This document shows, piece by piece, positions 5,219 to 25,527 of a stretch of 64,000 bases of DNA. The notes beneath the pieces were generated by a model. The model was not told the DNA's origin. It saw only the letters and a program-made list of their open reading frames with translations, and searched no databases. Each line of letters starts with the position of its first letter. Position 1 is the first letter of the stretch. The stretch comes from Macrostomum lignano (lineage: Eukaryota): the NCBI GenBank assembly GCA_002269645.1, contig NIVC01002230.1:62001-126000 (forward strand). Direction: 5' to 3'. Made by a program: the position numbers and the translations under genes.

Positions 5219-8200
5219 ATGATACTGAAGACATCTGCAAGCCTCAACTGCTGGCTGCCTCTTGCCTTCATTCTGACGGTCTCGGCTACCTCCTGTCTGA
5301 GCCTTGCTGGCCCAAACCGAGCTCATGTAAGTCTGAGCTTCAGCTGCTGCTGCTACTGCTTCTGAAGGGACCAGAAATTTGTTACTATTTTTCAGAAATA
5401 ATCATCATGTTCCGTGATTTTACTACATGTATATGGGTGATGATTATCCAGGTCAGGTCACTGAGTCTGTAGATACCGATTACCACTGCAGTTCAAATGA
5501 TTAGTGATGATTATCATCGCCTGGGCGATGATTGGTAGGATTATAAAAGACGGGAATGATGATCGGCATGATTATCAGAGCCTGAGAGATGATCGGCATG
5601 ATTATCAGAGCCTGAGAGATGATCAGCATGATTATCAGAGCCTGAGAGATGATCGGCATGATTATCAGAGCCTGAGAGATGATCAGCATGATTATCAGAG
5701 CCTGAGAGACGATCGGCATGATTATCAAAGCCTGAGAGATGATCGGCATGATTATCAGAGCCTGAGAGATGATCAGCATGATTATCAGAGGCTGAGAGAT
5801 GATCAGCATGATTATCAGAGCCTGAGAGATGATCAGCATGATTATCAGAGCCTGAGAGATGATCGGCATGATTATCAGAGCCTGAGAGATGATCAGCATG
5901 ATTATCAGAGCCTGAGAGATGATCGGCATGATTATCAGAGCCTGAGAGATGATCAGCATGATTATCAGAGCCTGAGAGACGATCGGCATGATTATCAGAG
6001 CCTGAGAGATGATCGGCATGATTATCAGAGCCTGAGAGATGATCGGCATGATTATCAGAGCCTGAGAGATGATCGGCATGATTATCAGAGCCTGAGAGAT
6101 GATCGGCATGATTATCAGAGCCTGAGAGATGATCGGCATGATTGTCAGAGCCTGAGAGATGATCGGCATGATTATCAGAGCCTGAGAGATGATCGGCATG
6201 ATTATCAGAGCCTGAGAGATGATCAGCATGATTATCAGAGCCTGAGAGACGATCGGCATGATTATCAGAGCCTGAGAGACGATCGGCATGATTATCAGAG
6301 CCTGAGAGATGATCGGCAAATCTTCGGATAGACAAAAAGTCAAAGAATTCGATTTTTTACTAACTAAAAGGTAACTTTTTTTAGCTAAAGTTCTTTGTTG
6401 TTCTTCTCTTTAACTCAGACCCATTGTAACTGTGATCCGATCCTGGGGGGGGGAGGGCTTCTGAGATAGTCATCTGAAGTTACTAAGGGAACTCCAGCCC
6501 ACAAAGCCTCTCTATCGGGACTTTGGGTCTTTTGAAACTTCAAGGTTTGAGTCTCTTCTCAGCTGTCTTCTCTCCTCTTATGTTATCACATCTTCTCTCA
6601 TGCTCTACACCTGGGGTTTAGAAAAAATTTTTACCTCAACGGCCAGTTAAACAATTTAGATCATTGACTGCGGGCCAGATGAAAGGGGAATGGGGGAGAG
6701 AAAGAGAAAGAACGAGGTGAGATGAGAGATGTCAGAAGAAAGGAGAGGTGAAAAGCGAGATAAGAGATGCGATGAGAGAGAAGATAAGACGAGAGGAGAG
6801 AGGAGAGAAGAAAGGCCACTGGCTGCTGCTGGCACAGAAGAACCGATTTGTCACCTGCCTTCATCGCGAGCTCCCAGGGACCTGGCGGGCAGGGGGCTGC
6901 AATGGAGGCTGGGGTGTCAAATGAAAATCTGGTTCCCAGCGATCCGATCCCCCCAGTCACGATTTCACAGCCTCTCCCGTTTCTCCCCGTAATCGATAAA
7001 TTTCATCAAACTCTGAGGAACCCCCGCCGATGTCAAAGATAAGCAGCACGGGTAAGCAGCACGAGTGAGCGTTTACTTGGATTTGCCTCTTGTTTACCCT
7101 AAAATTAGTAGCGACTCTGCACAATGTAAGAGGAATTTATAGCTGATAAATTGCTCCGCTAAAAGGCCTGATTTGTGAAGGCACCGTGACATTTTTCTGT
7201 CTTAGATCTAAGTGATAGATAACTCTCTCGTAGGAGCGAACCACTAAAATAGCCATTCCAACCATTGAGGTTGAAGGGTGGGAGGAGCGGAGCCATAGAA
7301 GCTGAAGGGTGGAGAAGAGAGCGGAGCCATAGAAGCTGAAGGGTGGAGAAGAGAGCGGAGCCATAGAAGCTGAAGGGTGGAGAAGAGAGCAGAACTATAG
7401 AAGCTGAAGGGCGGAGAAGAGAGCGGAGCCATAGAAGCTGAAGGGCGGAGAAGAGAGCAGAACCATAGAAGCTGAAGGGCGGATGAGAGCGGAACCATAG
7501 AAGCTGAAGGGTGGAGAAAAGAGCGAAGCCATAGAAGCTGAAGGGCGGAGAAGAGAGCGAAGCCATAGAAGCTGAAGGGTGGAGAAGAGAGCGGATCCAT
7601 AGATTTGAAGGGCGGAGAAGAGAGCGGAGCCATAGAAGTTGAAGGGTGGAAGAGTACGGAACTCCCCACTAGAACTAAAAAATTGCACTAAACCCGCCTC
7701 GCTGCCCAGCTGTTCGGACCCGGCTGCGAGTCTATCAACTGTGAATTCTCCAGCAACATTGATGGTGAGTGAGGAAAAACTTTTTATTCTATGGGGCCCG
7801 GCCCTGCAGCCCTATGCAAAGCCACAGCCAAGAGTCTAATCTGAAAAATCTAACTCCTAAAACTTCCTAACTACTATACTCAAACTTCCCAACTCCCCAA
7901 ACTTCCCGACTCCTCAAACTTCCCGACTCCTCAAACTTCCCGACTCCTCAAACTTCCCGAATCCCCAAACTTCTCAGCTCTCAAACTTCCTAAATAATCA
8001 CACTTCTCAACTACTCAAATTTCTCAAACTTCCCAACTACTTAAACTTCCCAAACTTCCCAAATCCCTCCCCACCCCCCCCCAAAATGGACGAGTCACAG
8101 GAAAAGCCTTCCAACTGCTCAGATCCCGCAGCTCTGAGTTCGTCACGCTGTCGCTACTCAATTGGAGACGCCAGCAGCCCAGCCTCGGACCCGCTGCTCC

Positions 8201-24753: not shown

Positions 24754-25527
24754 TCACGGCGCCACAGCGCACGACACGCCGATGCTGCCGAGGCTCTGCT
24801 GCAGCTGCTGGCCGCTTTCGCCCGTCCGCCTGAGCTCCAAGAATGGCAGCTCCACCCTGGCCTGTCCCGGACACGGGCACCGGACATCCGGCAGCAGTCT
24901 GGGCAGCCTGGCGGCGTCAGCATTGATGAAGAACTGAGGCTGCGGCTGAGCTCGGGCCAACTGGCAGCTGACGGGCCGGTAGAGCGCGCCGTGGCGGCCC
25001 ACCATGGCGTCGAGGCGGCGCAGGTCGGCGCCAGTCAGCGGCTCCGGCCGCGGCGGCCTCAGCGGCGGGTGCAGCGCGGCGCAGCCGGTGCCGTGCAGGC
25101 GGGTCACCAGACGGAGGCGCTGGCCGCCGCCGCCGCCATCCAGCGGCTCCAGAGACGCCACGGGCAGGCGGGCGGGGCGGCAGCGGGTGCTTGGCCGGCT
25201 GCCCCTCCAGCTTAGAGCAGTCGGACAGTGGCAGGTGGATTTGTAGCGCCGGGTTGGCAGCGAGTTGGCCGGCAGCTGAGTCGTGAGCTCGAATTTGTCG
25301 ATGCAGACGCTATCGGCATTCTCCGCCAGATTCGGAGAATTTCGCACTCTTTGGCTGAGGTTGCAGTAAAATGTAATTGTTAATGTTGTAGTCTTGTAGT
25401 TGTCAAATCTCAGGTTCGCGCTCCCGGCGCCCCAGCCGCAGGCAACGTGCTCAGTCTCGGATCTGAGCTGCTCTGCCTCTAGTAGCAGCAGAAACGACAA
25501 AATCGAAGCCAAGCAACTTGGCGACAT
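24754..25527 (-). CDS. Cassette B ligand: secreted intronless double IL-17-like protein, 257 aa
   Basis: ATG at 25527, signal peptide MSPSCLASILSFLLLLEA. ACGWGAGS is shared with ligand A. Module 1 is divergent (ENADSVC...LPTRRYKSTCHC). From ARLPVASLEPLD onward the protein is almost identical to ligand A. Confidence 0.75.
   Translation of the reverse strand: MSPSCLASILSFLLLLEAEQLRSETEHVACGWGAGSANLRFDNYKTTTLTITFYCNLSQRVRNSPNLAENADSVCIDKFELTTQLPANSLPTRRYKSTCHCPTALSWRGSRPSTRCRPARLPVASLEPLDGGGGGQRLRLVTRLHGTGCAALHPPLRPPRPEPLTGADLRRLDAMVGRHGALYRPVSCQLARAQPQPQFFINADAARLPRLLPDVRCPCPGQARVELPFLELRRTGESGQQLQQSLGSIGVSCAVAP

Follow-up and report, generated by a model that had tools for sequence, protein, structure and literature searches.

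Why do two neighbouring copies of a gene pair look like ancient paralogs in their 5′ halves and almost identical in their 3′ halves? This question is raised by a stretch of 64,000 nucleotides (nt), hereafter the window, from the inbred line DV1 of Macrostomum lignano (assembly Mlig_3_7, GCA_002269645.1, contig NIVC01002230.1, positions 62,001 to 126,000 of the forward strand). It contains two tandem cassettes, A and B, and no further copy was found in the 64-kb window. Each cassette consists of a + strand gene encoding a membrane protein and a − strand gene encoding a secreted protein, oriented tail to tail. We designate them 'receptor' and 'ligand', labels that refer to topology only. An earlier note, made from the sequence alone, had proposed two gene-conversion tracts at this locus, and the data agree with it: the tracts are separate, their ends are sharp and lie in mid-exon, identity extends to silent sites, flanks and arrays, and trees including two further copies of cassette A, called A′ and A″, are discordant. 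The probable answer is that an old duplication of the two-gene cassette had its 3′ halves overwritten later by recurrent non-allelic gene conversion.

A comparison of the two cassettes by blastn yielded three matches only. The tracts, the island of identity and the intergenic DNA are located as follows.

9844..10954, + strand: putative conversion tract 1, A side, 97.0% identical over 1113 nt to 22462-23561, covering most of the last receptor exon and the GACA array
22462..23561, + strand: putative conversion tract 1, B side, beyond which the GACA array continues to 23722
11346..11827, − strand: putative conversion tract 2, A side, 95.0% identical over 482 nt to 24711-25186, covering ligand residues ~128-272 and 43 nt of 3′ flank
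24711..25186, − strand: putative conversion tract 2, B side, blastn match to 11346-11827
12097..12120, − strand: identity island A (ACGWGAGS) in the diverged half of the ligand gene, 24/24 nt, E=1e-6
25420..25443, − strand: identity island B (ACGWGAGS), 24/24 nt versus 12097-12120
10955..11345, no strand: intergenic DNA of cassette A, not aligned to B, ~97% conserved among A, A′ and A″
23723..24710, no strand: intergenic DNA of cassette B, not aligned to A, holding an 11-mer minisatellite (24148-24618)

The near-identity of the receptor genes from AGCTTCAACCTG to the stop codon, reported previously, was confirmed base by base, with 12 substitutions and a 9-nt insertion/deletion (indel) in a CTG tract. 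Upstream of 9844/22462, DNA similarity between A and B vanishes. This point does not coincide with an exon boundary: 72 nt of the last exon precede it in A, and 57 nt in B. In the ligand tract, 18 substitutions and some indels separate A from B, and the near-identity does run through the stop codon into the 3′ flank, the 95.0% value including 43 nt past that codon. The lengths of the tracts, ~0.68 kb plus the array for tract 1 and 0.48 kb for tract 2, fall within the usual range of conversion, tens of bp to a few kb. Because both a noncoding 3′ flank and the GACA array are found inside the tracts, selection at the protein level cannot by itself account for the near-identity.

To quantify the contrast, the proportions of synonymous (pS) and nonsynonymous (pN) differences between A and B were counted by the Nei-Gojobori procedure, and step changes were evaluated with Fisher tests. 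The receptor ectodomain gave a pS of 0.60 and a pN of 0.38 (203 codons), versus 0.010 and 0.019 in the tail (222 codons). Values for the ligand were 0.61 and 0.48 in the N-terminal half (118 codons), and 0.069 and 0.020 in the C-terminal half (139 codons). Identity at silent sites, and a synonymous divergence that is not uniform along the genes, were thereby upheld for the receptor (p=5e-39) as for the ligand (p=3e-17). The two tracts are themselves unequal in pS (0.010 versus 0.069, p=0.007) and differ in age. GC content at third codon positions reaches 0.86-0.89 within the tracts versus 0.63-0.81 outside, with a larger jump in B, which hints at GC-biased conversion, or at A-type sequence copied into B. 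Outside the tracts, the ectodomains had been described as alignable only at scattered motifs; this did not hold, as they align over their full length with 42-44% identity (tblastn E=7e-28). For the 5′ halves of the cassettes, amino-acid identity between A and B is 40%.

Between the two tracts, the DNA past the GACA array is unalignable, as claimed, except that the ~70 nt adjoining the array are weakly similar. The unaligned part amounts to ~390 nt in A and ~990 nt in B. Given that the intergenic DNA is ~97% identical among A, A′ and A″, this gap between A and B is real and does not reflect fast turnover. The ACGWGAG island, also pointed out before, was found again as 24/24 identical nt in the otherwise divergent N-terminal half of the ligand. 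Lying in a region of pS ~0.6, it could be either a micro-conversion tract or the mark of a strong codon-level constraint at the mature N-terminus.

Assembly Mlig_3_7 was built with Canu from PacBio reads and polished with short reads (PMC5730564), and three-copy paralogous blocks, with ~2.2% single nucleotide polymorphism divergence, make up 70% of it (PMC10733133). Cassette A follows this pattern: A′ (locus L001, contig NIVC01002767.1) and A″ (locus L002, contig NIVC01002245.1), both in Mlig_3_7, have the gene order COG5, ORC3, RPL35A, cassette A in common with the window contig, which fits the published three-copy block structure. The sequence of A′ runs from the receptor gene through the array and the intergenic DNA and includes the last 86 codons of the ligand, and that of A″ reaches ligand residue 91. 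In their intergenic DNA, the A copies differ by 3.1%. Differences in the tail tract, per ~650 nt, were counted for all pairs.

A-A′: 8
A-A″: 13
A′-A″: 11
A-B: 12
A′-B: 13
A″-B: 13

In the tail tract, the distances of B to the A copies lie in the range found among these copies. For the ligand tract (304 sites) they are within this range or close to it, with 8-12 differences between B and the A copies versus 4-8 among the latter. Outside the tracts, B is an old paralog: in the 72 nt just upstream of the tail tract, 0-2 differences separate the A copies, and B differs at 27 of 57 positions. Trees that depend on the region, with B near the A copies in the tracts and distant outside, are the signature of interlocus conversion. 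Moreover, sites 9900, 10489 and 11587 unite A″ with B, against the sister relation of A′ and A″ in the flanking DNA, and the CACTAAGACA interruptions of the GACA array are present in A″ and B only. By a rough calculation, ~0.06 parallel changes of this A″-B type are expected by chance in the tail. As the sites in hand exceed this number, exchange was probably repeated after the subgenome split. The synonymous divergence between A and A′ is lower in the tail (0.010) than in the ectodomain (0.056-0.068, p=0.005), as would be expected if all copies were homogenised.

The same copies inform on selection. The earlier note supposed that ectodomain and ligand module 1 co-diverge to give pair-specific recognition. 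Among the three subgenome copies, which come from one inbred line and are not a population sample, the ectodomain instead appears under purifying selection, with a ratio of nonsynonymous to synonymous divergence (dN/dS) of 0.21-0.34 (pS 0.022-0.062, pN 0.008-0.015); in receptor exon 3, for instance, A and A′ differ by 10 synonymous and 6 nonsynonymous changes. In the diverged 5′ part of the ligand, 1 of 112 nt differs between A and A″. The tail, for its part, had been described as kept uniform by conversion. When the changes were placed on the four-sequence tree, it had 13 nonsynonymous and 4 synonymous changes, compared to 6 nonsynonymous and 10 synonymous ones in the ectodomain (p=0.04), so that recent tail changes look neutral. 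The uniformity of the tail would hence be due to copying, and not to the removal of amino-acid changes.

The events could then have unfolded as follows. An ancient duplication of the two-gene cassette would have produced A and B, whose 5′ halves are now saturated at synonymous sites. The cassettes would have diverged, until recent and recurrent interlocus conversion affected at least two separate 3′ tracts, copying ~0.7 kb of receptor exon with the adjoining GACA array in the first, and ~0.48 kb of the ligand gene in the second. This may have taken place around the recent genome duplication or later, with exchange recurring since. The tract ends would be, most simply, the points where divergence between the paralogs already blocked heteroduplex formation, and the 5′ halves, once diverged, would have remained outside exchange. 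Such a barrier would explain the boundaries of the tracts without calling on selection.

Some facts weigh against this scheme. The structure of cassette B is known from a single contig. Short-read polishing with Pilon, in a three-copy genome, might have generated part of the shared or incompatible single sites, though not the tracts. The annotation of the National Center for Biotechnology Information (NCBI) places no gene over either open reading frame (ORF) at the window, L001 or L002 loci, so that their expression is putative. As for protein function, the products have no homolog in the clustered (5.8e9) and representative (1.84e9) protein sets and no above-threshold Pfam domain, and AlphaFold models reach a predicted local distance difference test score (pLDDT) of 32-35. 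An artefact, in which contigs are collapsed or chimeric, or in which polishing copied one paralog onto the other, comes to mind in a triplicated and repeat-rich genome polished with short reads, with cassette B on one contig. We find it scarcely credible: 12 and 18 substitutions, plus indels, distinguish the two sides of the tracts, the tract boundaries are sharp, reading frames are intact in all copies, cassette A recurs on two other PacBio/Canu contigs within the extents of A′ and A″, and the whole of it, through ligand A, is present in a protein model (A0A1I8IY66, see below) of ML2, an independent assembly. A single recent event, either an unequal crossing-over or the duplication of a central block, could also have made a chimeric cassette, the intergenic DNA being replaced afterwards by indels and satellite turnover. 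Since the genes are convergent, both tracts indeed border one intergenic region; the weak ~70 nt similarity after the array goes in the same direction, and the GC content of the tracts (0.71-0.75), nearer to that of the rest of A than of B, suggests that A-type sequence was copied into B. This scenario has nevertheless little chance of being right, as it leaves ~390 and ~990 nt of unaligned intergenic DNA that is ~97% conserved among A copies as divergent as the tracts or more so. It also meets the unequal synonymous divergence of the tracts, and the sites shared by A″ and B, which mean more than one exchange.

Conversion might also be overlaid by selection. The cassettes would then encode cognate ligand-receptor pairs, in which selection keeps the ectodomain and ligand module 1 distinct, conversion being harmful there, whereas tail and module 2 would be free to be homogenised, or even favoured to be so. 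In both genes of each cassette, the 5′ half is diverged and the 3′ half homogenised, the diverged halves have similar saturated pS values (0.60 and 0.61), as expected under joint divergence, the topology suits one secreted and one single-pass membrane protein, and the secreted protein has a weak IL-17-like motif. We hold this added layer to be unlikely all the same. An interaction between the two cassette products is putative. The membrane protein has no family assignment, tests for SEFIR and TIR domains being negative. Between A and B, the diverged halves have dN/dS ratios under 1, of 0.44 and 0.61 (dS being saturated), and the purifying selection on the ectodomain, the single difference in 112 nt of the ligand 5′ part and the neutral-like changes of the tail (13 nonsynonymous to 4 synonymous, so that its uniformity is not selective) all point away from it. 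Two pairs in the window are, besides, too few for an analysis of co-variation. In its fullest form, a Macrostomum-specific signalling by cognate pairs, possibly derived from IL-17, would have its recognition halves selected apart and the rest (stalk, helix, tail and ligand unit 2) homogenised by conversion across cassettes and subgenomes. To this we attach a very low probability, and the likeness to self-incompatibility or allorecognition loci is speculative.

Coming back to the genes on which conversion would have acted, the models are given below.

5219..5326, + strand: receptor A candidate exon 1 (ATG and putative signal peptide), ending CAT|GTAAGT in phase 0
7710..7764, + strand: receptor A putative exon 2, phase 0 to phase 1, present in UniRef model A0A1I8IY66
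8132..8682, + strand: receptor A exon 3, main Cys-rich ectodomain and old-paralog region, with LDLG, IRRN, RLLA, DPGC and TAGLL.CG motifs
9572..9652, + strand: receptor A exon 4, 81 nt, GT-AG, length and phase matching B 22256-22336
9777..10526, + strand: receptor A last exon, with stalk, (CTG)n transmembrane helix, ~190-aa tail and stop codon
15325..15417, + strand: receptor B candidate exon 1 (putative signal peptide), ending CAT|GTGAGT in phase 0
20932..21022, + strand: receptor B putative exon 2, homologous to A 7710-7764
21121..21674, + strand: receptor B exon 3, ectodomain, aligned with A exon 3
22256..22336, + strand: receptor B exon 4, 81 nt, length and phase as A exon 4
22410..23135, + strand: receptor B last exon, in paired alignment with the A last exon
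11389..12207, − strand: ligand A, single exon, 272 aa, predicted signal peptide and 11 Cys, from ORF and alignment
24754..25527, − strand: ligand B, single exon, 257 aa, predicted signal peptide, from ORF and alignment

Each receptor-like gene is predicted to have five exons and to encode a type-I membrane protein of 514 amino acids (aa), the two most upstream exons and the topology being putative. Models A and B, first exons included, contain no internal stop and are 514 aa long each. The predicted products each have a signal peptide, 12-13 Cys in the ectodomain, conserved N-glycosylation sequons, a single transmembrane helix and, on the cytoplasmic side, a tail of ~190 aa; the ectodomain is rich in Cys and probably in beta structure. 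GT-AG sites and intron phases are conserved between the two genes. The ectodomain exons have phase 1 acceptors (8131|8132 in A, 21120|21121 in B), and a conserved N-x-S sequon, together with GT-AG sites and intron phases, positioned the last-exon acceptors (9776|9777 and 22409|22410). Neither the receptor ORF nor its splice sites are disrupted in A, A′ or A″, and the ORF is intact in B too; exon 4 of receptor A is 100% identical in A′ and A″.

No receptor signal peptide is present inside the coordinates where the earlier note had reported divergent ones. A scan for first exons, requiring an ATG, a hydrophobic stretch and a phase-0 donor, gave one strong candidate upstream of each receptor-like gene, at 5219-5326 and 15325-15417, both ending with CAT|GTRAGT. 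For receptor A, the ORF and donor of this exon are kept in A′ and A″. At exon 2, conservation among the A copies starts at the acceptor, and homology between A and B is visible as a shared F..GC...C..S pattern. Two other starts for receptor A were examined and rejected: the ATG at 8086 is a CTG in A′ and is followed by a 1-nt indel, and a start codon donated by a spliced leader at the exon-3 acceptor would be out of frame.

Simple repeats punctuate the receptor-like genes. Homologous introns carry unlike microsatellites, (GTTA)211 in A (8695-9538) and (TAC)184 in B (21683-22236). A (CTG)n tract (9960-10030 in A, 22585-22640 in B) codes for the transmembrane helix and varies in length by copy, with ~25 residues in A, 17 in A′, 15 in A″ and 22 in B. 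The (GACA)n array begins within the TGA stop codon of both genes (10525-10954 in A, 23134-23722 in B).

Support for the receptor A model came from UniRef entry A0A1I8IY66, a 937-aa protein of the ML2 assembly that fuses RPL35A to receptor A and to the antisense strand of ligand A. It maps to 2830-3186, 3945-4208, 7710-7763, 8113-10595 and 11335-12150, and its exon boundaries match the receptor A model exactly, plus the small upstream exon at 7710-7764. This entry is the only public model containing receptor A, and it falls in the RPL35A 90% cluster. The blank returned by clustered databases for receptor A is therefore in part technical, as the entry is hidden in that cluster.

In the ligand genes, all 11 cysteines are conserved between A and B, and a weak internal repeat may be present, the two halves matching at a BLASTP E value of 0.12. 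Two IL-17-like units in tandem may thus make up the ligand. Long + strand ORFs run antisense to the C-terminal tract of the ligand, at 11239-11877 in A and 24673-25215 in B. They are probably a by-product of the high GC content, and A0A1I8IY66 reads through one of them.

Searches for relatives of the two proteins returned little. For ligand A and for the mature-ligand alignment, no homolog was found among the best 8000 candidates each in a clustered database of 5.8e9 proteins, and a HMMER profile of the receptor had no match among 1.84e9 representative proteins. Sequence and profile searches of the PDB gave nothing relevant. With Pfam, nothing exceeded the threshold, whether whole proteins or separate modules were scanned; the sole match was that of ligand A to IL17 (PF06083), with 13.3 bits and E=0.11, below the cut-off of 24 bits, and neither ligand B nor the separate modules matched this family. 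We also made our own IL-17 profile from six human paralogs. With this profile, ligand A scored 13.4 bits and ligand B 10.7 bits, and 30000 shuffles of ligand A with matched composition all stayed below 13.4 bits, the best being at 13.1. The signal lies at FFINADAARLPRLLPDVRCPCPG in the C-terminal unit of the ligand, with a weak echo, LRYEARCQC, in the other unit. The secreted protein may accordingly be a diverged IL-17-like cystine-knot protein, which we regard as a lead and not as a result.

Structure predictions by AlphaFold2, on two-sequence alignments, had pLDDT values of 32 and 35, and Foldseek found no significant match to the models. For the ligand (pLDDT 31.9), nothing came out at E<5. 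The low-confidence receptor-like model is beta-rich, and its top Foldseek matches were generic beta-sandwiches with E>=0.013. The tail had given by eye the impression of a TIR/SEFIR-like domain. There was no Pfam match at E<=10, and the tail did not pass the shuffle tests, its score on home-made profiles being reached by 145 of 3000 shuffles for SEFIR and 598 of 3000 for TIR, so that this idea was withdrawn. Our search for literature on Macrostomum and interleukin-17 found none.

Partial concerted evolution is familiar from the non-binding versus peptide-binding exons of major histocompatibility complex (MHC) class I genes, from KIR/Ly49, from the Fc-gamma receptor genes and from RHD/RHCE, and Innan and Teshima are said to have modelled duplicates under conversion. 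The locus described here resembles such paralogs: the copies are old, the near-identical tracts are of sub-kb to kb size with sharp intragenic ends, identity includes silent sites and flanks, and trees depend on the segment. Unlike in the known cases, two adjacent, convergent and unrelated genes per cassette each have their own tract, the family is an orphan without annotation, and the triplicated genome lets up to six copies exchange. We regard the locus as one more case of a familiar process, in a gene pair that is unannotated and lineage-restricted. It is a clean and well-bounded example of partial concerted evolution, in which two neighbouring genes are affected together in a genome of recent triplication, and it is convenient for measuring conversion in M. 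lignano, be it among paralogs or among subgenomes. The locus also reveals two intact and selectively constrained genes that the NCBI annotation missed, receptor A being in UniProt only within the chimera fused to RPL35A, and hence invisible to searches of clustered databases.

Linked receptor and ligand genes are found at the Brassicaceae S-locus (SRK/SCR), in Papaver (PrpS/PrsS) and at the pheromone/receptor (P/R) subloci of basidiomycetes, which have paralogous cassettes. As in these systems, a secreted Cys-rich gene adjoins here a single-pass membrane gene, the unit was duplicated as a whole, and the diverged parts are N-terminal and presumably extracellular. In contrast to them, the putative recognition parts show neither exceptional diversity nor diversifying selection among the three subgenome copies, but purifying selection, and the present case is known from genes alone, with physical linkage as the observation. 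We know of no need for a linked recognition system in the biology of M. lignano. If the cassettes did encode cognate pairs, they would constitute a paralogous 'specificity cassette' like the fungal pheromone/receptor subloci, in an animal. A function of the allorecognition type would matter far more if true, and no tested result supports it.

The weak resemblance to IL-17 can be put in similar terms. The ligand motif F-I-N-A-D-x-x-R-L-P-x-x-L-x-x-x-R-C-x-C-x-G aligns with the core D-x-x-R-x-P...A-x-C-x-C-x-G, a weaker second copy (LRYEARCQC) is present, and the neighbouring gene encodes a single-pass membrane protein. Unlike in IL-17, the C-terminal G-C-x-C is cut to a single Cys and each chain would hold two such units, and unlike IL-17 receptors, the membrane protein has no SEFIR signal. 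If the signal is true, it could point towards cytokine-like signalling in a free-living flatworm.

The window is dense in micro- and minisatellites throughout. Rfam and tRNA scans of the window, as well as exact look-ups of its ORFs, gave no match. Two Ty3/Gypsy retroelements were recognised, at 34303-39004 with gag, protease, reverse transcriptase, RNase H and integrase, and at 44150-47576 with broken reading frames and an unusually high GC content (67-69%). Between them, a minus strand ORF at 40252-40779 encodes a fibrinogen C-terminal domain (Pfam E=1e-22), and is probably one of the exons of a gene related to fibrinogen. Also on the minus strand, ~30000-33039 holds a gene for a forkhead-box transcription factor, with the ATG of exon 1 at 33039 and a second exon; its intron holds an (AGAC)n array (31950-32068), and many of its splice sites are uncertain. 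Finally, the RPL35A gene (2389-3213) is devoid of introns and is preceded by a 27-mer minisatellite (2352-2764) that is open in its reading frame, and a second RPL35A paralog is located at an unrelated locus (L004-L006).

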